Assembly: GCF_031769215.1 (NCBI RefSeq)
Contig: NW_026781915.1
Coordinates: 2,170,001 to 2,234,000 of the forward strand
From: Ylistrum balloti
Taxonomy: Eukaryota
Direction of reading: 5' to 3'
DNA: 64,000 nt
Shown here: piece after piece, positions 39,674 through 64,000 of the stretch
Position numbering within the stretch: position 1 is the stretch's first letter
Layout of the letters: every line of letters begins with the position of its first letter
Made by a program: the position numbers and the translations under genes
The notes under the pieces: model-generated
What the model saw: the letters and a program-made list of their open reading frames with translations, nothing else
What the model was told of the DNA's origin: nothing
The model's database searches: none

Positions 39674-42600
39674 ATGGGATCAGGAAGCAGCTCAGCGACA
39701 AAAGCAGAGCAGCGCCCCGCCACCTCCCCAAATGTAGGCAAGACGGCACTAAACGGCTCGGCTGCAGCCCCAACCGTAGCTCGCACGCCTCGGTCTGCTA
39801 TGCCCGTGAGTTCTTCCGCTTTACAGTTTCAGTCTCCCCTCAGGGATGTTCGCACCTGTAGATACTGACGAGGTACGACCACTACACGCATGGCGACCAG
39901 TGCTCGTGCTTGTCGAGAATTGGCGTTAAGTGTAGCTTAGTACTTCGTCGGTGTTTTACAGGTCTATTGAGATCAGACGACAGTTAAATTATGACTGACA
40001 AATCATCAATATATCGAACCTAATTAATATATTAACAGTTTCGTTGAACATTGTGCTCCAGTCATTTCAGCGTTAAGATATCTGTGTCGTAGTTACTGTT
40101 ACACCGTCTAATGAATAATGACGAATCCCGAACACACGAGTAGACAATTATGTGCATAGAATGTTTTATCAAGATTCACGTATGATGCGCCAATGGTAAT
40201 TGCTATTTCTTTGTTCGCGTACCGCAAGCAAAACATCATGATACAAAGCATTTTCTATAGAAAAATCCGATCGATTACCACTTTCTTAGGTATATAACAC
40301 AACTTTATTGAATTCTTTTGTATCTTAGTTGAATTATTATGGAAGCCCTGAGAGAAACTTTTGGAAGAACTCATGTACATATATCATGAACACACCTGCT
40401 TTCTTCTGTCAATGGTGTAGCATGGAATGCGCATGTGTATATATTTTAGTTTAAATGTTGTGTAATTAGTCACTATAAACGTTTAGATGCACCCAAACTT
40501 TTTTATTTGTTCTATCCTGATATGAGCATGAATCCTTAAGTTCTAAATATTCATAGTCAATATCAAAATTCCTAGAAACAGGAGCAAATTATTTTTTTCC
40601 TCATTAAGCTTAAAATTATATATATATATACTCAGAAGTATCTATAGTGTTGATGATCGAGTTCACGTCAAAGAAGTGTAAATACAAGATCAGAGTGAGT
40701 ACCTGACAGGGAAAGTGGTATTATTTGCATTGGTTAATGTATTTGGTGAGGTGAATTTATTACAATTACCAAACAGTAATCGGCTCAAAATTCTATTTTC
40801 AAATTTCCTGTTCATGCTGCAGAATATGAAATACACAAAATACCAACTTAATTTACAAGCTTTCTCTACACTTCGTTTTTATTTTGTGCAAATCTATTCA
40901 TGGATATGACACAATGAGCAATTTTTGTAAAAAATGTAGTTATGTTCCTATATTGGAAGACATTTATTTAGCAACTTAACTCCATTGTGTATATACCTCT
41001 AAATGACAGGCTGCGAATCGGGACGAGGAGGATCAGAAGGTAAGACCTACTACAGTGTTTACTAAATAGAAACACATATTGACAAAAGCTGACACATGTG
41101 ATATCTCTAGAATACTAGACTTTAAAAATGATAGACAAATCATAACCTTTTTTCTATGTATGCACGAAGATTATATAAAAATAACAGATTTTAATATCAA
41201 GCATGATTAAGGATTTATTTTTTGTATTCTGGTGTCTTGTGTAACAAAATGCACGGATGAAAAATTTCAAAAATTATTAACATGTAATTTCAAATACGCA
41301 CCATGTGTAGAATGAATTGTGAAGAGGTAGCATTTGTTTTTCGTTACTCCCAAACCTCTGTACTACCCAGTTCACTGTATATATATGTATCTTAAACACT
41401 TTCAGAAGTCTTTTTCTCCATTTATTTCAGCCCTTCACACCGCCGTGAACTGACTCTTCCCCATGACAGTAGCTCCTTTTCCTTGCCCCTATCCCACACT
41501 ATTTAAACAGATAGTGACCAGTGTACAGACACTCTGTGTTGAGACATTCTATTGTGCTTCATTTTCCGTGTTTAGTCCATTTCCCCTCAAATAAACGTAC
41601 AACGTATCAACATCCCATACATATTACCTTGGTATTATTTCTGTATCTGTAAGAACTAATGCTACCTTTTCTTCACCACATATAGAATTACTCTCACCTT
41701 TAACGAATTTATTTACAGGCTCCTATATTATTTATGATATACAGTATTTTCAATAAAAGTCAGTATTTGATATGTGATATATTAGCTAGATTGTAGCAAT
41801 ATAGAAGCCAGTATATGATATGTACATAAACCAGTTTGTATTTCTTTTACAAACCAGTGTGTAATATGTGTATAACTGAGTAATTGTTTGACATTAACGA
41901 AATGGTCTTACATATGTTGTGTATCCAATTCAATACCAGCATCTTAAGTGCTCCAGACTTTTTCTTATCTGAAGACGCTCTAAATGTCATTGATAATACA
42001 GATAATAAACATACACTCAGGACATGTTTAGCGATAGTAGAGGCATATGATATTTCAAACTTAAGATTAAGAACATGCTTGTCTAGGAGCAGTAAGCAAT
42101 TAAAAAAAATACCTGATATGTTACATCAACAAATCTACATTTTATCCAATTATGTTTCTAGTCTTCGTAAATCAGGCGGAACTTTAAATCACAATTTATA
42201 TTGCTAAGATATATGTATCCCATTCAAGGCGACATGTCGAAACCGGACAGACTATTTAAGTCAATCATGTGTAAACCGGACAGATTGTGTAAATCACTCT
42301 TTAGTAAACTCACTGATTTACGATTTCTCATTCACCGAATATTTACACAGACAGAAAATATTTGTATGCCAGTTTAAAATGTTTATTATTATAAAAATGT
42401 TCCTATAAAAACATGAACCCTTAGCGGTACTGTCTTTTATGTCATTATAACGTCATGGTTGACGTTCTGTTTAGGATTGCTACTAAATCAAACATCCATT
42501 ACGCCTTTGTAATTATATTAACCAAGCAATAGAACCGACAACATATAGGAGTCGAGGTCATGTCTGTATGAACACAGTTGTTATTATTTATGTGAACTCC

Positions 42601-45600
42601 TGTAACAATAACGCTACCCTTGGCGTGATAGTCACGGTTCATTGGACACGGAATTTGCTGCCGATATAAAACCAGTCAGTTTATACGATTTACCAAGCCG
42701 TACCATTTAACGTGTATATCTTTTCCTAAAGAGGCTATTTTATTTTATTGAAATAATTACATTTGAACTTAACATAAAACTGTTTTTTTTTAATATTAGA
42801 ACCATATGCTTATTTACCATGATATAAGCCCTTATCAATGTTTCGTATTTTAATGTGTGTAAGTATTGATCAGTTCCACCTGAATTATTTCTATATAACT
42901 TCCGGTGATTTAGGTGTATTAAGTTATACGTAGGGTTTTAAAGATAACTTGTTTAAACTGACTGATCACGTTTCAGTTCCACGAATTTCCTCTGTTTTTC
43001 ATAGAATTCCCCTAACGCCCATTTTCTGTTTCTGATCATTAGGACATCAATACGTATATATATATATATATATGCATATATTTCTGTGTACGTTATTGTA
43101 ATTCGGACATTTTTTCCGGTATGACATTGTTTGTTACCATACCTTAAGTTACGACAAGTTTTGACAATAATTCTATGAATAACCAAGTAAAATCTACACA
43201 CCTGATGATTTAATGGTTTATCCGTCAAACATTGTGCTTCTTGCCCTAGAATGGCCGTATGTGAAGTGTACCATTGTCGAATCATTATGCAGAATATTTT
43301 TGAAAATGAACATATTTGTATTCCCATTTTAATGACCGGCGATTTGTATTCACAGGTGCATATTGTTTTCTTGTTTACTAGTACTTGTTGAATGAAAACC
43401 AATCTGAAGAATTCATTCTTTTTATTGACCGATTGATTTTCCACCTTATACAACATGTTTGTCCTGTTATTGCCATTTAGACCGGTCAGCACCTTTGTCT
43501 GATAGGTTGCTTGCAGAGTTTGGATATCTGAACAATTGCTATACATGATTAGGTAAATGGCCAAATGCCTTGGATGTATGGTTGGCGAGGATTTAGGTTG
43601 CTGGTTTCCAAGGAAGTTCTATTAATCCGTGTATCTTCACCGAGCTGTGCCTATTGTCCTCTCTCTTATCATACTATTGATCACCGTAAATAATCTCTGC
43701 AATATGTTAATAAGTATTGATTAGTTTGATATTATTTCTAAGGCCTTAAGGTTTCTGGACAATCTTGTGTCATACCGCCCTCCAAAAGCCACGTTTTCAG
43801 TGCCATAAAAATTCCTATATTGACTTTAGAAATATTGTGTTACATAGGAGCTAATCCTGTATTTAACCTTGGCAATGTCTGATACGGTAAGTAAGACACA
43901 ATACTTCGTTAGATATCCGAATAGGATATATTATATCTAGCCATACTGATACCAGCAAAAACATGTGATTTGAACGTTATAGAAACATGTATGGCACATT
44001 TACGTGTTATTGACTGTTGCAGTTGAATTTTTTAATTATGTTATAATTAGTAGAACATGTCAAAATAGGTATTACTCATAACAAGTTACTATTCAGTTTA
44101 ACGCATTTAAATATTTACTGAAGATATGGTCTAAAGAACTCTTTCATTTCTAACCTGTTTCTCGGTTATCTGTGACATTTTTATTACTTAAATGTCTTCT
44201 CATGCGGGAGAATGATATTACAAAACTACACACCAAATCATTTGATTAATAGTGTATAGAAAGATAATTTTATGCTTTAAATATTTCGCCAATCAATGAC
44301 GAGATCGTACACTTGACTGAAGTTTTTTTATCCTTATCATTGGTAACTGTCAGCTGTGTAAGGAGAACAAGCTAAAACGGAGGTAATAAAAAAAATATGA
44401 TATCTTCATGAAATTTAGAATGAAATATTTATGGTATGCTTAAAAAGTATAAATAACATAATATTGAAATATATGACTGTTGTTTATCTTAAGTATGTAA
44501 AACAAGATATTAAATATACACTACACTCACATATATCAAATTAACTACTTCTTTATATACATTGTATATTCAACAGACAAATTATAAATAGTGATATTGA
44601 ATAAATGTCAAAATATAGATCCTGTTTGTTTGATTTATGAGATTGGCCATTTAAATCAGTTTAAAATTACTCTCGTTGAGACATTGGTCCATACAAATAT
44701 GAGATTTAATGGAAAACTTATGTTTCGAATATCGACCTGTGCTCATGGTAATGCAAAGCTTTTCAAAAAAATCATTATTCGTCGACTATGGCGTCGGCAT
44801 TACAGATTCATTTAACACACACTATCGATACAGAGAGATATGTAACTATCTCCCTAGAGCATGATAGGTGACAGGATGGGCGATAAACAAGAGACGACTA
44901 CTCCTACCGGGGAAACTGAGGTACTCTATGTATATGTAAAATAAACAACATTCTTTTTAACTATTATGTTGTACATGTATAAACATACATTGTTTTGTGA
45001 ATATCAATGCTGATTTTGCTTCTGATGTTCCTTACGTCCTTTCTGAATATCACGTCATACATGATATATCTAGTTATTAGAGTATACTGAGTTGTCCAAA
45101 ATCATATTTCAGACTTTCATCCAACGGCATATATCAGAATTGGGAAATTTTTGCAAAGTTAGTTATAACATGTGTAGCAGATTTATTTAAGACATTCTGT
45201 TATAAAGTTTAAGTAAATGATACATTCTGATTTGTTTCCCTGATCGGGGACCGCTGATTTTTCGTTTTGTATCGTTTTTTCTTATATTGATGTCTGGTGT
45301 TATTACGCCAATGTGTTTTCGTTGTATTACCGATACCTTTGACTGTCATTATGAAATGATTTTATCGTATTACCATAGTTACCTGTCTTTCCGACGACCA
45401 GATTTCAATTTTGAGTCAGTATAATAATTAGTCTTGATACTTTTATTTTGTCCTTGAGCATTTTGGTTCTTAACATTATCTAAAACTTAATCCAGTTATG
45501 ATCCAGTTTACTCTTACCGTTAAGCACACCAGGATTCAGTCATTTTATCTTTTCTTGTTGATTTTTGACTTCAGATAAAATTAGGTCTTTTTAGTTAAAT

Positions 45601-48600
45601 ATCATTCTGAATATACTATATATCTAAAACATCTATTGCTAAACTAATAAAAATTTGCCGTTTCACTGTGGTATCTTTATAATTCTTTAAGATTATTGAG
45701 TATTTACCTGGAACACTTTAGTTATGGTGGTAACTCCTGCGTGTTATGTTTGAAATATAACAAATACTGTAGAATATACACAGGTGCTGGATTCTCCTTT
45801 GGAACTGCTCAATGACACACTTTTACCAAATTTATAAATGTATGAAGTAAGTTCACATATTCTGACGGGTTTCGTTTTGCTAACTGACTTTCTAGAATTC
45901 TTTTGGTTATTGGCATAATTGATGATTCTTCGAAGACAAAAAACTGTATTACGTACGTATGTGTCACAAATATACGTATAAATTACTTAAGTCGTTTTGG
46001 ATGTGTGTTTTGTTTAGTTCATTGTGTATTGACTGATACTTTATCGTTTGTGTTGACTTGTCTTCCTTTCGGTTGATGTTGTCTTTAATTAATGCTCCTT
46101 CGACGTCTTCTGTCAATGTGTTATGATCTTCCGACTTCTGTCGTTATGTAATGTCCTTTTGGCTTATTCTGTCCTTGAATAATGTTTCTTCGGCTTATTC
46201 GGTCTTTGTGTAATGTCCTTCTGACTTATTCTGTTATTTCGCAATGTTTCTGCGACTTACTCTGTCCTTTTGTAATGATCTTCTTACTTTGTTTAGTAAT
46301 GTTGCCTCGACTGTTTTTTTATTGTTGTTTAATGTTCTTTCGACTTATTCTTTTTTGTAACGTTTTTTCATGACTGTTTTTATCATTGTGAAATGTTTTT
46401 TCTTCTTACTTTGCCTTTGCGTTATGTTCATTAGACTAATTTGGTCTTTGTGTGTCGCTGCTATCTGTGAAGACGTCATGCTATATTTCTCTCTATATGT
46501 TGACGATATAACACATTTTGTATATGAACTGAATACGTAGTTTCTGTTTATGGCGTTTATTCGAAGCTATATTATTCTATATTATTTCATATTATTTTAT
46601 GGGTTGATGCGAAGGTTTATTTTTCTGTGTTGGTGTGAAGAAACTCTAGTCGGTACGTGCTAATGTTCATAGAGATTTTCTTTGTTGATGAAAATGTGGG
46701 TTTCCTCGCTTTGCGTTGATTTGTGATTTTTGGTTTGTATATGTTGAAGCTTATGTTGGTTCTGTCTGTATTTGTTGATGCTGAAGCTGATGTAGAATTT
46801 TTCAGTAGGTTTTGTTGCTGATGTAGGTCTTGTCAGTAGGTGTTGGTGCTGTTGTAGGTGTTGTCAGTAGATGTTGATGCTGATGTAGGTGTTGTCAGTA
46901 GGTGTTGATGCTGTTGTAGGTGTTGTCAGTAGATGTTGATGCTGATGAAGATTTGTCAGTAGATGTTGATGCTGTTATAGGTGTTGTCAGTAGGTGTTGA
47001 TGCTGTTGAAGGTTTTGTCAGTAGATATTGGTGCTGATGCAGGATTTGGTAGTAGGTGTTGATGCTGTGTAGGTTTTGTCAGAAGGTGTCGAGGCTGATA
47101 TAGGTTTTGTCAGTAGATGTTGATGCTGATGAAGGTTTGTCAGATGTAGAGGCTGATGTAAGTTTTGTCAGTAGGGTTGATGCTGATGAAGGTTTTGTCA
47201 GATGTTGAGGCTGATATAAGTTTTGTAAGTAGGGTTGATGCTGATGCAGGTTTTGTCAGATGTTGATGCTGTGTAGGTTTTTTCAGTAAGTGTCGAGGCT
47301 GATGTAGGTTTTGTCAGTAGGGTTGATGCTGATGAAGGTTTTGTCAGATGTTGATGCTGATGTAGGTTTTGCCAGTAGATGTTGATGCTGATGTTGTCTA
47401 TGAGTATTTATGTATGTAAGTAAGACCAAGATAAAGTGAAACTAAAGTTTCGCGAATATTACAAATTAGACAGTATACCATATTTAGAGAAAGACTTAGA
47501 TTATTATTAATTGACTCGCGTGTGTCGTTTGTACAATCTATGGACTAAGTGGATAACATATCTTTGAAAACTCGTGTTAAATTCCGATCTCAACGTGATC
47601 ACATGGTTAATCTCACCATAACGCTACTTAACGTGTGGCGAAAGGATGATACGTTTTGTTGGAGATTTGTTTTGGTTACATTGTCCGCTGGTATGTAGGG
47701 ATACTAGTACTTGTCAGCGATTGCTTATCTTAACCTCAAATGTATTGATTGAGCATTTATTAACCTGCCAGTGTTGGAGATGACAGCTTAACAAATCGAT
47801 AGCCGTATCTCCCAAGCACATGCCCCGACAAACTTTCGATCAACCCCACGTGATAACGTGAAGGCCGTTTGGTCTAATGGCGACCAGGTATTATTCCGTG
47901 AAGCAAACCGTATTGACTTCAAACGACACTAAAATTGACCACAATTTAAACTCCAAAGAGAATCTTCCATTTGTTCTCATACGGTACGCATACGGTAGGA
48001 TTCAGACGTCACATGATTGTGAGTTAAAAGGGCCCAAAGTTTGCACAAACTTTCTAGATTGTGTACAGCTGTAAGTAAACGGCATTAATCTAACGGCCAC
48101 TGATGCATTCAGATAAAGTACTCGATGGAAGTGAAGATTGTTATGGATTATTCGTATAAAACAAAAGATGACTTCTAATATCTAGATTAAGATAAAAACT
48201 TCTTCAATAAAAGGATTAGATCCTTGTTAAACACTTCAGGAGACATCTCCCCCTGTGGTGTAATTTTACTGGTGCTTGTTAGAGTCGATATCAACACTTG
48301 TGTGTTGTTCAGCGCCATATCAGCACATTAATAATTGGCTTAACCAGAATGACTCAGGTAAATCTATATATCACTCAGAACTACACAAGCAGATCATTTA
48401 TAAACAATTTCCTGGTGGGATTGTGTTAAACATTTAAGATTAAGTGTTTGTTTAGATTCCATTCATCAAGCACATAAATGTACATAGCAATGTGCTAAAG
48501 ACCTAGGATTTAAGGATCTTTTCTGTTACGTCATGAGTAAAACCCACGATTTTATATGGCCGGAAAAGACACCTGTCATTGTTTGCCTTTTTTAACTACT

Positions 48601-51600
48601 TAGTTATGCTTAGGGCAGACTAAATATAGGGGACAATTACCTTCTCGTTCTCATTTTTGTTTCTTTTTTCTCTAAATTTCATTGTCGACTATACTTTTAC
48701 GGGACGATATACACTAGTTGAATTACCGATTTCCTATTAAAAGAGAGGTATAAAAAATCCGTTTATATTTTTGTTCAATTTCGCCAAAAAGGTTTTGTGG
48801 GTATGGCTTTCTTCATTAAGGGTTAAATGATTTTAATTTCACCTTGTTTGTTGACAAATCAGTCATTTGACAAAAATAAATTTGAAATGTTTTGTTCGAC
48901 TGTATGCCATTTAAATCTTGATGCCATTTTATATACTGTTAAAAGACGATGTACAGGAATAATCCAAAACCATATTGTTATAATATTCATCTCACCAGTA
49001 TTTTCAAATATTGGGAAACCAGGATATTGAAATGCATAAAATTTAGGTATTCGAATCACGATGATTCCATCGTCTTTACTGTTTATTAAAATTGTTCAAA
49101 GATTTTATTACGAATATTTTGTGATATTGAAATTTTTTGTATCCATATATATGCTGCTTCACGTTAGTTTATCTGTACACTGACCTGACCAGATAACAAC
49201 ACTGGACCATTTTCATACGGTCTTGGGTGTAATTGCACATTCTATATTCCCTTAGCGGCACCAAAAATAGTATTTACGTAACTGCACTTTTCTTCGTTGA
49301 CAAATACTTATCGAACGAATAAAACAAGTATCCAAATACAATGTATTCCTAACCAAAATTCTTTCATAGATGAAGTTGTTATTTCATATCTAATCGAATT
49401 GTAACAACAAGAATAGTGAACATCCATGTATATATTCATTTATGATTTTCATGATGGGTAATTTCTTGACAATTAATACATGCGTTCGATTTTAGGGGTC
49501 AAGGACAGCAGCCGCTGGTAAAGATGATGATCACACAAAGAAAACTAAGTTACCTCCCCCTTTGCCATCCACGAAGACCAAGGATGAGTTGTACTTGATT
49601 GAGGATTATAGTTATGTCGAGGACTTCGTGCTTAATGTAGGTGCAGATTTCTGATTGCTTATCAAATAACTTTTTTTTAACCTTTGTTTTGATTTCATTA
49701 ACATATTTCCATTTCCCATATCAACACATCTTTAGTTGTTTTTCCTGTTTTGTTGATATTAGAAAAAAATCTCCTCTCGAAAACCGGATCAGAACAATGT
49801 TTCGGAAAATTCAAATATTATTTATCAATGAAGTCAATGAATGACTTGAGTCTTGAAGCTGATGAACTGTGAAACACGTGGTTCTTTGCAGGCACCAACT
49901 AGTTTGCTGATTGGCACATTCAAGGAGCTCATCAAATACCTTACATCTAATGAGAAATGGGACGATGTCGCCAAAGCCAGAGCAATCTTTCGATGGGTGA
50001 CGTCAATAAATGTGTTTGAGCTTGTGGTAGAGGATGAACCTCCGGTACATTCTCCACTCGAATACTTTCTCAAGATCCAGAATAATCTGGGAAACCATGC
50101 TCATCTTGTTTCCGGTCTCTGTCAGTAAGTATAAAATGAAAGTGGTGTTGTAAGTTTTACAGCGCCAACTAGCATACAATGACACAAGAACAAACTTTAC
50201 CCTGTCCTGCGAACAGTACTGTATCACACATACAATTCGTGCGTAAAGGGATGGTAACGGCCCGGAATGTTCCGGACGTGACATATATGTGTGATGTTTA
50301 CAGGTGTATCATATTTATGTGTGCAGAGTAAAGAGAAAACATTTCGACAAATTAAACAGTACTGATATGGAAACTTTGCTTCCTGAACACATCATAATTT
50401 CTACGTACAGTTATAAATTTCATATAAAAAACAAAATTGTTAAAACCCAAAGTATGTTTGGAAATCCACAGACTTACCACATTACCTGCTAATACATTTA
50501 AATATGTAGAAAATTTAGAAATAAGGTATGTTCAAATCGACATTAAGTTTGCTAATACCTATTTTTTTGACAGAATGGCGGGAATTCCTTGTGTGATAAT
50601 AAGTGGCATGAACAAAAGCGCGGCTTTTGAAGTCGGCGGAAAAGTAGATCGAAAAAGCATGGGGGCTCAGTGGAATGCTGTCTTTGTAAAAGGGGAATGG
50701 CGATTCATAGATGCCTTCTGGGCCTCTGCTTGTGTAGTAGGCAAGAAGTCTGGGGAATGGACGCTGATAGACTCGGATGGAAACATAACTCAGGACGAAG
50801 ATCAGACGTCGGATGGGGAAACACAACACCGTATCAACGAATTTTACTTCTTACCCAACCCAGACCAGTTCATATGGACACATTTTCCGGATGAATCGCA
50901 GTGGCAGTTGTTGGAAAAACAAGTTACGCTGAAGGAATTTGAATCTCATGTGTACATTAGAGAACGGTTCTACTATCTTGGAATGTCTTTCAGCAAAGAG
51001 AGTGAGCAGCAGTGCTTACTAACTGCAAATGATGGGGCTGTTGTATTATCATTCAATTTACCCTTCCGTGATAGCGAGCACTTCCGGTACAAGTATATGT
51101 TGTACCAAGCCAGATCAGGCGGTGGTGACCAGAATTCGGATATGGTGTTGGACAGATTTGTAATGTATGAACATACAGCCGAAAATCTTCGATTTGCATT
51201 ACGTTTTCCGATGAAAGGAAAGTTCAAAATGGACATTTTCGGACTGGATGTTCGTGACTCAGACATTTTTGACCTAACGTGTACATATGTGATCAATTGT
51301 TCAACTCCACAAAAGAACTGCCAACCTCTTCCTGACTGCCCCGCAATTGGTTGGGGTCCAGGAGCTGACGCAAAGAAGGCGGGACTGACAGCAAAGACTC
51401 ACGAAGGTGCCGTGATCACAACGGAAGACGGCGTAGTGGATATCAAATTGGGATCGCACAAAGATGTACAGTTACACCAGCTCCTTAAAAACACAGTGGT
51501 TGACGAGGCAACGTTAAGTAAGTATGCTCTGGTTCGAGAAGAGAATGGCGAATTCATAGTCAGCGTTCGTCTACCACAGACAGGCGAGTATGCTATGAAA

Positions 51601-54283
51601 CTATACTGTAGTGACGAAGGCGAGGAAGGTGACGCGGAAAACGTCCTTAATTATCTCATACAAAGTCTAAGCAATGACATTAATAATAAACCTTTTCCAA
51701 ACGTCATTGACGGAAGACTGGGGAAGAAACCATTGGCAGACATTATGGGGGTGAAGGCGATGAGTCATACTGACTCCAAGATTGATTCAAAAGATGGAAA
51801 GTTGAAAATGAATTTTATTGCCAAGAACAATTTGGATCTTCTATGTGAGCTCCATACAATTGACACTGAAGCAGCGAAACATATGAGCATGGTTGTACGG
51901 GAAGTAAATGGCAAATGGACGTTTGACTGCGACTTACCGGTCGCTGGGGAGTATTCTATAAATGTGTTCGCCAGAGTGAAGAATGGAGGGCCGAGGGTAT
52001 ACAATACTCACAGCTATCTGATAACATCTGTCGGACATATAGCAGGCCAGGAAAAAGGAGACGACTCTAAGAGTGTGTCGAGTGACACCGAAGAGAACAA
52101 AATCATCACGGAGACAGTTCAAACATCAGATAGCGAGGTCCTGATACCTATTCCCCATGGGTACGACGAGGTCTTGGCATCGTATCAACGACGGCATGCA
52201 AATGACCTTCCAAACGAAGACGAACTCAAGGTTGTAAAACAGGACTTGATGAAGTTCTTCAGTGCGAAAATGTTCGAATACGGCGAGTACTTACTAGATC
52301 TATACCAAAGAGAATCTGGTAGTAGAATTATCAGACATATAGCTAAGTATCAGGTGGACAGGAAACCGGCTTCAGAGTTGTTTGAAGACAACGCAAAACT
52401 GCTAATGTCTAATCTTGGTATGGTACCAGAAGAGGACACAGCCTCGTATGGCGAAACAGACGAGGAAAAAAACAGACGGACAGCCAAGAAGATGATACAA
52501 AGAGCTATGGAATTAAAGGATATCGAGTTGTTATCACGTGGTCTATTCGCATATGAATCTACAGAGCCTCCGGACATGGACAAGGACCCCTTCATCAGAA
52601 AGGCCAAGAGACTACTGGAACTTTTGCAAGCCAAACAGGGTGAGATTTGTTTCTTCATCTTTCCAACCGCACCACATGTACGCACATACACTCACAAACA
52701 CACATCTACTCTTACACACAGACACATACATACCTTGCTGTCTATGCCTATCTATTTTTTACATAATTGTCAGCATGTTTTGGAAACTGATAAATTTTGG
52801 ATATATGAAAGACTGTCCCGTATCATTGCTGGTATGTTCCTGTTTTAAAACATATGAAAGTCGAGTAGTACAGTATACATCGTCATCGTCTTTGCTACAC
52901 TATTGCCTGCAATATATTTGTTTTACTTTTTAGAACTGAACAGTGCCTCGTCCAAGAGGGATCTTAAAGCTCTCGAAAGTGCTATAGAACGTGCCAAGGA
53001 AGCAAATTATGACCATCTGCTCGACCTCCAAATTGCAATGGCTTCACGTCTTAAGGATCAGTTATTAAGAATAGAAAAACTACGCCACTCGGTGCTTAAT
53101 ATGGACCAGAAAGCTGTCTCTGAGATCAGAACGTATGCCAATCCTCCAGACGGTGTACATCAGTCCCTCATGGCGACATTCTTACTGCTCGGGCATCCTA
53201 GGAAAGACGTGAAAGTCAGTATCAAAAATAAAACTTCAATTAAACAAAAAAAAAAAAAAAATGACATGTACCTACCTCCCTACTCGACTACATGGTCTTA
53301 TTTATATTGTACTGTCAGGTGTCTTCATGAAAATCTTTCTTTTGTTTATATTTTGTCCTTGTTTCATCGAACTTTTAATTAAGATACTTTTGACATGTGG
53401 GTGTATTTATTTGTTGTTTCTATAAAATCTTTGAGTCTCTATATTCATAAGCAGATGGTTGTTACGTCTAATTTAAATGCTAATTTACATACCCGGAACG
53501 ACAACCGGCGCGGATCACACAACATTTTGTTTAAATAACAACATATAACGTGATTTGTTTTATATTTAACCATTTACAAATTTTGTTGAATTATTGCAAA
53601 GAAGATAAATTTTAAGTTTGATGCGTACATAACATAGGCTTGTTCTGCATATAACAGATCTGGAAGAATTGCCAGGCGATCCTGGGTAAAACCGGCAAGG
53701 AGTCGGTGATGAGGAAGATATCGCAGTTTGATCCAAAGGACTGTTTTCTTGATGTGGCTCTTGCAGCACGAAAAGTCTTAGAACCTTACACTTTGGAGGT
53801 AATTCGTGACGTCAGCGCTGGAGCTGCCACTTTTTATGTATGGGTAAGTGTTAATCTATCTATCAGTCTTTGAGAAACTTCGTGTGTATTTACATGGTAA
53901 AAACAATAATACAATACCATTAATATGAAAAGCATGGTTTACGATACATAAGCGTTCGAGATATAAATGATTACATGTATACGTAAATTAGCTTCATATA
54001 TTTTTCAAAATAAATTTAAAACTGTACAATAGAACCCAAATTGCAATATATTAAAGTACATTGCAAATCATGGCTTTAAATGAAATGAAATAAGTCCAAT
54101 GAGTGCTTTACGACAAGAGTAGGTTTCAATGGGGGTAATAAGGATTTCATCTACTGGATGTTGTAATTTCAGTCGAAAGGAATGATTGATGTGGTCGAGA
54201 ACACGGGAGGGGCGCAGGCCAAGGATGGAATGGCTGGGGGCGGGTCAAAGAACACAAAGTCAGTAGCGAAAAAGAAGCGATAG
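39674..54283 (+). CDS. Hillarin/KY-like pseudo-transglutaminase protein with an N-myristoylation motif, four beta-rich repeats and a C-terminal dynein-type microtubule-binding domain (~1,060-1,080 aa)
   Basis: In-phase GT-AG exons: 39674-39805 (MGSGSSS...SAMP), 41010-41039, optional 44858-44920, 49496-49636, 49892-50124, 50574-52639, 52934-53214, 53658-53843, 54173-54283 (TAG). The TGc-like core is KARAIFRWVT...LCQMAGIPCVIISG...QWNAVFVKGEWRFIDAFWAS...NEFYFLPNPDQFIWTHFP. Exons from 49496 onward are high confidence; their link to the 39674 start exon is supported by the MGSSSS start of the paralog. Confidence 0.85.
41431..41448 (+). CDS. Candidate alternative terminal exon (PFTPP*), giving a 59-aa short isoform
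   Basis: Strong acceptor tctttttctccatttatttcag at 41430, in phase 0 with exon 41010-41039. Immediate TGA, with AATAAA at 41590 and 41752. Confidence 0.45.
   Translation, partial: PFTPP
46080..47395. repeat. Two adjacent degenerate ~30-bp minisatellites (atgttcttcgacttattctgtc...-like at ~46080-46440; gttgatgctgatgtaggttttgtcagtag-like at ~46740-47395)
   Basis: Read directly; intronic, with no ORF of 60 aa or more spanning the larger array. Confidence 0.85.
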
Positions 54284-55346: not shown

Positions 55347-55865
55347 ATGTCATGTATATGCCTCTATGGTGCAAAGCTGCGAGGACAAAACGGAGAATGC
55401 TTTATGTTGTAAGTGATATATGTAAACATGATGTCTTGCTGAACATACTCTTTTTCACATGTCAATCTTACTTTCATTACTGTTTATTGATTGACTAAAA
55501 GTGAAGACTCATATTCTCCTTGCTTGGCACGATATTTCAGTCCTTTGGGTCCCGGTCATTTTACCTGGAGGGATTTCAACATATCAGATGTCGGGAAACC
55601 GATGTTCCTCTCGGATATAATGATGGACTTCCTCAAAGACTTTGGTCCACCTAAGGATTTGGGCCTAGACAGACATCACGCGCTTAAACACATGCACTTT
55701 CAGTTTGTTCGTCCGGCGTCAGCGATGTCTAAATATGGAAGTTTGTCAATGTTACCAGACTCAAGAACCGGAAGTTTCCGATCGACGAGATCACTGCGTT
55801 CTGTTCGGTCAACAAGGTCAAGGTCAAGGGGGAGGGCTAAATCAGCCTCAGTGAGGTATAGGTGA
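55347..55865 (+). CDS. Small orphan protein with a basic Arg/Ser-rich C-terminal tail (two putative exons: 55347 or 55404 to 55408, and 55541-55865)
   Basis: Exon 55541-55865 follows the acceptor gatatttcag, is higher in GC than its flanks, and encodes PLGPGHFTWRDF...RPASAMSKYGSLSMLPDSRTGSFRSTRSLRSVRSTRSRSRGRAKSASVRYR*. The upstream ATGTT|gtaagt donor (55408) is in the required phase 2. No family recognised. Confidence 0.55.
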
Positions 55866-61004: not shown

Positions 61005-64000
61005 ATGGGATCGAGTTCATCCAAGGGAAGCCGTTCGTCATCGGTGGCATCAGCTGTTACCAAAACAGTACAAAAAGCGGTAAAGTATATAGTTAATCAG
61101 CATGGGAGAGCGAATTCATCTCATTATCTATGACAGAGACACGTATTTTATAATCCCTGCAGGTATTCATTTCATTATTAATGAAACAGATATGTTTTTT
61201 TATATTCCATGGAGGTCGCCATTTTATAATTTTAGAAAGATATATGTATTTCATAATTCTTCCTGGTAGCCATTTCATTATCAGTTTCACACAATAGCTA
61301 TTGGTCATCAAGCGCTTACTGTGACATATCAATTTCATCACTTATTTTAAGCTTTTTGAAAGAAGACAATAGCGTCGATCTCATTTTATTTTGACCCTTG
61401 CTTCTGAACATGATTAGAAGTAAGAAATGAACATTTGTCAGACATCGTCGCTTTTCCATTTCTCCTGCGGACCAATTTCGTCATAATGTTTTCAAAAATT
61501 AGAATATTGAAGAATGTTGGTGTTAAACGAATAATCTTATGCAACGTAAACATACCGGGTAGAATATTACAATGTTTTTGGAATATCGGTTAACTGGCAA
61601 AAGGCTTTATCAGTTCTAAATTACTTCACAACTTTTAATTAACCCTATTAAAACTGAACAAACCCAGATAAAAGGTAACATTATTCTCCCGCAATCCTTT
61701 TAAAGTGATAGATTGATATTCTACCTCTCCAGTTATGCAGTATTCTACCAGAAATGTTAAAATGAAATACTCTTTTGCTAACTTTGGTAAAATGGTATTG
61801 TTATCTACCAGTCCTCTTATAGTGACAAAATATTTAACCAATTATGGTAGAATGATGCATTCTACTAAACCAGGTCAAGTGATAAAGTATTCTACTACTT
61901 CTCTTCGAATGAAGTGACATAAAGTTGTTCCTCCCTGTGAAAATGATGACGTATTCTACCAATCCTGATAAATTGTTAAGATATTGTAAAAATCCTCACA
62001 AAATTCTGCCAGTCCTCTCAAATCAATATAATATTTTAAAAGTCCTCTTTAAATTATACAATATTCTACCAGGTCTGATAAAATAACACAATATTTAACC
62101 AGTTCCGATAAAACAGCACAATATTCTACCAGGTCTGATAAAACAGCACAATATTCTACCAGGTCTGATAAAACAGCACAATATTCTACCAGGTCTGATA
62201 AAACAGCACAATATTCTACCAGGTCTGATAAAACAGCACAATATTCTACCAGGTCTGATAAAACAGCACAATATTCTACCAGGTCTGATAAAACAGCACA
62301 ATACAATATTTAAAAACCAATATTCTACCAGGTCTGATAAAATAACACAATATTCTACCAGGTCTGATAAAACAGCACAATATTCTACCAGGTCTGATAA
62401 AACAGCACAATATTCTACCAGGTCTGATAAAACAGCACAATATTCTACCAGGTCTGATAAAACAGCACAATATTCTACCAGGTCTGATAAAATACAAATG
62501 TGTTATACCAATCTAAGTAAAATGATACAATATTCTAACAATTGTGAAAAAGGATACAATTTTCTGTCAATCCTCTACGAATTATCTACAATATGATAAT
62601 GATACAGTATTCAACCAGTCTTGATAAAATGATAAAGTGTAGTTGAAATCCTAGTAAAATGATACAATATTCTTCCAATCGTGATAAAATGATATTGAAA
62701 CCAATCGTGATAAAATGATACAATATTGTAGATAAAATGATAAATCCTCGTGATAAAATGATACAATATTCTTCCAATCGTGATAAAATGATATTGAATT
62801 CTACCAATCGTGATAAAATGATACAATATTCTACCAATCGTGATAAAATGATATTGAATTCTACCAATCGTGATAAAATGATATTGAATTCTACCAATCG
62901 TGATAAAATTATATGAAATTCTACCATAAGTTACATAGCACTTTATTCTAATGGTAAGTATTTCAACTTGCAGGTTTTGAGAAAGCCAAAGAAACCACCA
63001 GCAGGCACAATCGCAGCGGATGGAACACCAATACCAGTCCCTCCCGTCAATGATAAAGCTGTTATATTGCAAGGCATCAACTTTGATGTGCTGGATGAGA
63101 TAGCACTGCATGTAGGTGTAATTGTTATATTCATATCGAAATATATGAATTAATATAACATTGAAAATATTGATATTATTATATATCCTTGTGCACAAGA
63201 ACATACTTTGAAGATACATGTATATTGCCTCACGTGTTTCTTCATGGAAACCAAAGGGAATAACCTGATTTGCCGTAAATAAAACAATATAAGACTGGCA
63301 TGTAATATATGCCCGATGTCCCAATCCTCATGTCTTTTTGACAATGCACGTGCCATTCTATGATCTCTGATTGGTATAGATATAGATTTCATTGAAATTT
63401 TTATCGGATGTTTTTGTAGCACTGCTGTTATATAAATAGAAAAAAGGATGTTATGTAAAATATGCACCGTTGTTTTCTTATGCTCAAGCAACATTGGTGA
63501 ATATGAAAATTTGACATCGTGAAAAACGACTGTTCGATTCACCGAACGGCGGCAGAAGGTCATCTACTCGGTCACAAAGGTTTCTTTGCGTGCTTTAGTT
63601 TTCTCCCGCAGTACGACATCTCGCGTGCTTCCTTCAAGGACAACGATAGTGATTGGTATAAGCTGAGATGACTTATTTTGCAATATTTGTAAAATATATT
63701 ACATTAACTTACACTTATAGATGAACCATTTTAATTGAATGTTTTGCTTTCTCTCTTCGCTATTATGTTTATTTTGTTCCATTACAGGCCCCTCTCGATA
63801 TATTACTGGGGACATTCTGGGACGTTGTGGAATATCTTGTGATAACACCAGAAGGAGAAGTATTGGATGATTTATCAAAGGCAAGAATGTTTTTCCGTTG
63901 GATAACGTCGTTTGATGTTTACACAATTGACACGGAAATTATCCCCCCTGAGGAGTCACCTCTTGAATACTTTATGAAGATCCAGTACGACCTTGGTGAC
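61005..64000 (+). CDS. Second, tandem hillarin/KY-like paralog, 5' part (runs off the right edge of the window)
   Basis: Phase-0 exons: 61005-61079 (MGSSSSKGSRSSSVASAVTKTVQKA), 62974-63111 (VLRKPKKPP...PVPPVNDKAVILQGINFDVLDEIALH) and 63788->64000 (APLDILLGTFWDVVEYL...DDLSKARMFFRWITSFDV...PPEESPLEYFMKIQYDLGD). The last exon is clearly homologous to exon 49892-50124 (APTSLLIGTFKELIKYL...DDVAKARAIFRWVTS...PPVHSPLEYFLKIQNNLGN) and starts at the same boundary. Confidence 0.85.
62058..62928. repeat. 30-bp minisatellite family in intron 1 of the paralog: caatattctaccaggtctgataaaacagca (62058-62495) and aatattctaccaatcgtgataaaatgatac-like (62605-62928), with degenerate copies back to ~61735
   Basis: Read directly; it explains the repetitive ORFs YCAVLSDLVE, ILCCFIRPGR and FNIILSRLVE. 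Confidence 0.95.
63531..63700 (+). mobile_element. Degenerate tRNA-derived SINE remnant (bivalve Meta/V-core type)
   Basis: B-box-like GTTCGATTC at 63532, then ggtttctttgcgtgctttagttttctcccgcagtacgac, resembling the recalled SINE core ggtttctctccgggtactccggtttcctccca. It ends in the AT-rich tail ...gtataagctgagatgacttattttgcaatatttgtaaaatatatt. Confidence 0.55.

Follow-up and report, generated by a model that had tools for sequence, protein, structure and literature searches.

We describe here a gene of the scallop Ylistrum balloti whose product ends in a motor-less homologue of the microtubule-binding domain (MTBD) of dynein. The gene lies in a 64,000-nt stretch of the + strand (GCF_031769215.1, NW_026781915.1:2,170,001-2,234,000), hereafter the window, in whose numbering all positions are given, and it comprises eight coding exons at 39674-54283 (+ strand; Table 1). 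These were placed by tblastn of P0001, the 1059-aa NCBI model "uncharacterized protein LOC132561948 [Ylistrum balloti]", which was retrieved by a search with the large exon and maps onto the window with 100% identity. The structural and evolutionary reading of the gene, namely a dynein-type MTBD without a motor, carried on a hillarin/KY-like pseudoenzyme with predicted acylation, is well supported. We give about an even chance to the further proposal that P0001 is a cortical scaffold of the hillarin/KY family, which ties the inner face of the membrane to microtubules through this module.

Sequence kinship with the dynein MTBD

A dynein-type MTBD at the C-terminus had been claimed in an earlier reading of the window (the original prediction), and the claim was borne out by profile searches. 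When a profile of 28 orthologous C-termini (alignment A1) was compared with all PDB sequences, it matched 62 chains, every one a dynein heavy chain and every one at the MTBD, with a best E of 1.2e-8; a domain-trimmed profile (A2) gave the same outcome, with matches to dyneins only. PF12777 (MT, "Microtubule-binding stalk of dynein motor") was matched at E 0.01 or better by 14 of the same 28 C-termini, which matched no other Pfam family. The orthologue from Gigantopelta (P0045) scored 33.5-37.5 bits (E 2e-9), well past the gathering threshold of 24 bits, over profile positions 85-213, which correspond to the MTBD and the adjoining ends of the coiled coil. Likewise, a language-model look-up in the ESM Atlas returned PF12777 in 80 of the 100 nearest clusters. 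Judged by sequence, the resemblance of the C-terminus to dynein is well above chance.

At the level of single residues, the ordered landmarks on which the prediction relied were found in register: E-I-R, ANPP, LLG, the Trp of helix H3, and the S...W of helix H6. Against yeast dynein, the invariant E931 and the ANPP motif fall in the region of E3122. The family also possesses two invariant motifs of its own, GKTGKES and SAGAATF, which are missing from dynein; the first results from a three-residue insertion, relative to dynein, between H3 and H4. A P-loop reading of GKTGKES was rejected, as the spacing is incompatible with GxxxxGK[ST]. A recent dynein pseudogene fragment was excluded by conservation across phyla (52% mean column identity), and no second MTBD-like copy was found elsewhere in the 64-kb window.

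In the scallop gene the domain is masked both by exon splitting and by the divergence of this particular orthologue, and is revealed by orthologues and profiles only. Pfam searches with single exons gave no match, in line with the expectation that a domain split over exons would be hidden from a single-exon reading. P0001 and its last 210 residues gave no PF12777 match at E 1 or better, so the InterPro-style test that had been proposed would fail if applied to the scallop sequence alone.

Fold of the C-terminal domain and absence of motor parts

An AlphaFold2 model of aa 870-1059 had a mean predicted local distance difference test score of 83.5, with a core above 90 and the last 20 residues below 50. 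In the model, the stalk helix CC1 (aa 898-922; 53023-53097) is followed by H1 (aa 926-933) and H2 (aa 942-952), and a six-helix bundle lies between CC1 and CC2. When the model was searched against the PDB with Foldseek, the top 48 places were taken almost exclusively by dynein MTBD or stalk structures, as the prediction had anticipated for such a check; they included the mouse microtubule-bound MTBD 6rzb_C (template-modelling (TM) score by target 0.72, root-mean-square deviation (rmsd) 2.6 Å) and yeast 6kjo (TM 0.71, rmsd 2.2 Å). A structure comparison gave scores of 17.0 for 3ERR (140 residues, rmsd 2.9 Å), 16.9 for 5AYH, and 11.0-16.1 for nine further dynein MTBD structures, with the best unrelated chain at 5.0. 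By profile and by fold, the identification of the C-terminal domain as a true homologue of the dynein MTBD is well supported.

The scallop protein differs from dynein heavy chains (PF12777; 3ERR, 6RZB, 6KIO/6KJO) in what surrounds this domain. Pfam found no AAA ring, linker, or other dynein motor domain over the whole of P0001. CC2 is reduced to a stub of about 20 helical residues after H6, followed by a disordered tail with a net charge of +6, and the protein ends in this basic tail 36 residues after the conserved W1023. The prediction had likewise described a protein with no AAA ring, linker, or long CC2, ending about 35 aa past this Trp. On the other side of the domain, CC1 extends from an array of alpha-helical hairpins, whose helices an extended model places at aa 808-840 and from aa 851 onwards, and not from a long antiparallel stalk. 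The long CC1/CC2 stalk joined to an AAA+ ring was looked for and was not there, and the region is therefore not classifiable as a dynein stalk; the C-terminus of P0001 is a stalk-less, motor-less MTBD homologue.

Partial conservation of the tubulin-contacting residues of dynein

In the yeast dynein MTBD, there are six salt-bridge residues whose mutation reduces affinity (Nishida et al., PMC7042235). We mapped these contacts onto the scallop protein via a HMMER alignment, the numbering of which was verified at K3116/K3117, E3122, R3124, R3152, R3159, R3201, and K3204. Three of the six are kept. E931 (yeast E3122) is invariant in 46 orthologues and present in 98% of the wider family described below; at the position of R933 (yeast R3124), 98% of orthologues and 80% of the wider family have K/R; and at that of K964 (yeast R3152), 76% and 37%, respectively, have K/R. 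The other three are replaced, K3117 by Gln, R3159 by Gly, and R3201 by Asp, and in each case a conserved K/R is found one position off in at least 93% of orthologues. In addition, the MTBD-like core has a net positive charge. The alignments thus suggest that the tubulin-facing surface of dynein is conserved and charged in the family, yet non-identical.

Gene model and transcript support

The last three exons had been predicted to splice in frame, and this is what we find. Exons 6 and 7 are each preceded by AG and followed by GT, and exon 8 is preceded by AG and ends at a TAG stop (54281-54283). A Glu codon is split between the last base of exon 5 and the first two bases of exon 6, and the phase-correct spliced translation of exons 6-8 reproduces the peptide given in the original prediction and matches the NCBI model P0001 exactly from residue 868 to its last residue, 1059.

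Table 1. Coding exons of the P0001 gene (window numbering)
Feature	Position	Strand	Evidence
Exon 1: start codon and N-terminal MGSGSS, aa 1-44	39674..39805	+	tblastn 100% identity; GT donor
Exon 2: 30-nt micro-exon, aa 45-54	41010..41039	+	exact peptide match, AG/GT borders
Exon 3: low-complexity linker, aa 55-101	49496..49636	+	tblastn, splice borders
Exon 4: first part of transglutaminase-like core; Leu at catalytic Cys position	49892..50124	+	Pfam, alignments
Exon 5: remainder of core (His to Ala, Asp kept), three KY-type Ig-like domains, first helical hairpin	50574..52639	+	Pfam, model
Exon 6: second helical hairpin, CC1 helix, MTBD helices H1 and H2	52934..53214	+	translation, structure models, alignment
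Exon 7: MTBD helices H3-H6, invariant W963, GKTGKES insertion, W1023	53658..53843	+	alignment, model
Exon 8: remnant of CC2 (ending near aa 1034), basic tail, disordered, aa 1035-1059, TAG stop	54173..54283	+	translation, model

Run X1, the one run found to hold the locus, is DNA, not RNA, and its contigs read through the introns without joints. Evidence at the transcript level came from P0004, a scallop orthologue from another species that is 90% identical to P0001. It is encoded without interruption, as a reading frame of 1047 aa with the same C-terminal domain, on four independent transcript-like contigs of 3.5-5.3 kb from four SRA runs. Since the Ylistrum locus covers 14.6 kb, we take these contigs to represent spliced mRNA. 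The transglutaminase-like and MTBD parts are therefore joined in the mRNA of a close relative, and a gene-model chimera of two genes was rejected.

N-terminus, transglutaminase-like core, and KY part

P0001 starts with MGSGSS, that is, Met-Gly followed by a small residue at position 3 and Ser at position 6. An MGxxxS-type start of this kind fits the N-myristoylation consensus, and a Cys at position 3 fits additional palmitoylation. The predicted motif is kept, as MG[SAV]xxS or MGCxxS, in 39 of 43 full-length orthologues (molluscs, brachiopods, and one annelid), in agreement with the N-myristoylation that had been proposed, and is followed by a low-complexity linker of about 90 aa.

Next come a Transglut_core domain (PF01841, aa 116-226, 29 bits with a cutoff of 23) and Ig-like_KY (PF23265, 199 bits in three stretches), a combination shared with the hillarin / KY (kyphoscoliosis peptidase) / LTD-1 / Cyk3 family. 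Alignments with a fish KY-like protein, Lingula "hillarin", and Chlamydomonas FAP246 all showed that, of the catalytic triad, Cys is replaced by Leu and His by Ala, and only Asp is kept, which justifies the name pseudo-transglutaminase that the core had already been given. The core is 30% identical to that of the Lingula protein, which likewise lacks the catalytic Cys and His, and 26% identical to that of the fish protein. In comparison with this family, P0001 adds the N-terminal acylation motif and the C-terminal MTBD-like module, and no LIM or SH3 domain was found in it by Pfam. The module is not present in the Lingula "hillarin" paralogue (P0245) or the fish KY-like protein, and Hirudo Hillarin was not among the proteins obtained with the Helobdella orthologue (P0172) as query. 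The best PDB sequence match of the core and the segment that follows it (aa 171-296; ~50574-50930) was FAP246 (7n6g_6E, E 0.004), which hints weakly that KY-like proteins are related to the transglutaminase-like proteins of cilia.

A wider family carrying the module

The architecture is not confined to this gene. We scored the A2 profile against 1.84 billion representative proteins and obtained 1905 clusters at E 0.001 or better, 589 at 1e-10 or better, and 63 at 1e-30 or better, so that the module shown here for one scallop gene is shared with hundreds of uncharacterised invertebrate proteins, many of them not KY-like. The best 150 range from 98 to 1861 aa, far below the length of dynein heavy chains. 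The module is nearly always at the extreme C-terminus, in distinction to dynein; in 204 module-bearing proteins, the median number of residues that follow it is 17.

Partner domains were counted by Pfam in 148 representatives. Ig-like_KY was found in 44 and Transglut_core in 20, PF12777 itself was detected in 12, and about 90 have no other Pfam domain; CLCA/VWA, CARD, EGF, TMIE, CD20-like, EF-hand, and CFAP97 domains occur sporadically. The databases thus label the family in part, via PF12777 in some orthologues. The EF-hand-bearing member, with its possible link to EFCAB5, was not located by a regular-expression search. Among the 30 clusters for which taxon names were looked up were amphioxus (many), the tunicate Styela, a sea cucumber, bivalves, gastropods, and annelids; all are "uncharacterized" and none bears a functional name. 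Fold clusters of the AlphaFold DB add sea urchin, rotifer, orthonectid, ascidian, and leech. The survey that had been suggested for proteins with transglutaminase-like and MT domains but no AAA domains was productive: the module ends KY-like proteins of molluscs, brachiopods, annelids, and amphioxus. Because the fusion is found in amphioxus as well as in lophotrochozoans, we consider it old. No description of this family was found in the literature on non-dynein MTBDs, PF12777, hillarin, RSP2, or intraconoidal proteins.

Predicted membrane anchors recur in the family, although the counts are not phylogenetically independent: a myristoylation-like start is present in 33 of 141 Met-starting representatives (24 of 43 KY-like proteins and 9 of 98 others), 19 of these 33 with MGC, and a further 19 representatives, including the CLCA/VWA proteins, have a strongly hydrophobic segment before the module. 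Since the CLCA/VWA proteins have a signal peptide and one transmembrane segment, their module is predicted to be cytoplasmic. About one third of the family would accordingly combine a membrane anchor with a cytoplasmic, C-terminal MTBD-like module, a predicted pattern that supports the tether idea independently of the KY part.

Two groups of family members have other arrangements. Four amphioxus proteins (P0089, P0092, P0091, and P0099) are either CLCA plus VWA type-I membrane proteins or KY-like plus CARD proteins, with the module at the end. Three to five MTBD-like units in tandem occur in P0125/P0235, P0139, P0165, P0190, and P0195, of which P0139 comes from an MMETSP transcriptome of a marine protist and the others from ENA, JGI/IMG, and Logan assemblies; the PF12777 score of P0125 is 118 bits.

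Possible roles of the module

From the N- to the C-terminus, the protein comprises a myristoylation motif, a linker, a dead transglutaminase-like core, three Ig-like domains, two hairpins, and the MTBD homologue. Having neither an AAA ring nor a long stalk in which CC1 could slide against CC2, the domain would be incapable of dynein-type switching and may instead act as a constitutive binder. The likeliest ligand would be the microtubule lattice, bound via the H1/H3/H6 face with the assistance of the basic tail, and the protein could then link the inner face of the membrane, together with the partners of its KY-like part, to microtubules. Both microtubule binding and the tether function are inferred.

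The main rival to this tether function is that a true dynein-MTBD homologue has been re-used for a non-microtubule partner, whether cytoskeletal or signalling, so that P0001 would be a cortical scaffold without a direct microtubule link. We consider this less likely than the tether, though likelier than the alternatives below. Such a change of partner has a parallel in Chlamydomonas RSP2 (7jtk_C, residues 441-587), a non-dynein protein with the same fold (9-11% identity to the scallop module) seen in a solved radial spoke structure; RSP2 is located in the radial spoke neck, not on tubulin. The alteration of three of the six salt-bridge positions, one of them to Asp, the invariant motifs foreign to dynein, and the CARD domains among the amphioxus fusion partners also fit a non-tubulin partner. 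However, the family as a whole retains the Glu/Arg pair of H1 and the basic residue that follows the Trp of H3, basic residues adjoin each lost contact, the core is net positive, and the tail is basic. Moreover, a non-dynein protein of the same fold has been observed on a microtubule: residues 1207-1457 of a Toxoplasma intraconoidal-microtubule protein (9ya2_L), again with 9-11% identity. From its residue range and the accompanying text this is probably ICMAP2, and the ICMAP2 paper does not mention a similarity to dynein (PMC12819142).

Weak fold matches (TM 0.5-0.6) were also seen in Swiss-Prot AlphaFold models, to residues 64-227 of Trypanosoma brucei FAZ1 (Q585H6) and to residues 1319-1480, the C-terminus, of human EFCAB5 (A4FU69). 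FAZ1 and EFCAB5 are thus possible distant members.

A structural role in cilia or flagella, with the protein docked on axonemal microtubules and not acting as a general membrane-microtubule tether, is improbable. FAP246, the best PDB match of the core, belongs to the Chlamydomonas central apparatus, one family member has a CFAP97 domain, and RSP2, FAZ1, and EFCAB5 are relatives by fold. Every one of these links is weak or indirect, however, and the conserved N-terminal acylation motif is better suited to a membrane-associated protein than to one inside the axoneme. Finally, a convergent, generic helical bundle or a chimeric gene model is already largely refuted and retains only a marginal probability, even given that P0001 alone has no Pfam MT match and that helical folds can reach middling structural scores by chance.

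With membrane tethering by P0001 as the preferred reading, we tentatively suggest, at somewhat less than even confidence, that the scallop gene belongs to a large and as yet undescribed class of microtubule-associated proteins (MAPs) of a static kind, in which a stalk-less MTBD sits at the C-terminus of proteins of invertebrate bilaterians that are anchored in the membrane by myristoyl/palmitoyl groups or a transmembrane segment, with tandem versions in protists. Such proteins would couple the membrane or cortex directly to microtubules at the site used by dynein, possibly in competition with it. The dynein MTBD is regarded as part of a motor, with its affinity set by the stalk. If the free-standing MTBD binds microtubules, it would define a new MAP class using the dynein footprint, and would offer a natural, registry-independent MTBD with which to study how the domain binds. 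It would also connect the hillarin/KY scaffolds, a poorly understood family, directly to microtubules at the molecular level. The wider family would then amount to a sizeable group of candidates, expanded by lineage, for linking membranes to microtubules in molluscs, annelids, brachiopods, echinoderms, tunicates, and amphioxus.

Neighbouring features in the window

A second KY-like gene begins at 63725-64000 (+) and continues past the end of the window. Its 47% identity to aa 94-169 of P0001 identifies it, by sequence, as a tandem paralogue of the P0001 gene. In the intron between the first two MTBD exons, the word depth of run X1 rises to 150-210 at 53232-53480, compared with ~10-12 elsewhere, with loose ends and a poly-A run; this segment is an interspersed repeat. 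Just downstream of the P0001 gene, at 55491-55865 (+), there is an open reading frame of 124 aa whose end is rich in Ser/Arg and which may represent an exon belonging to the gene that follows.
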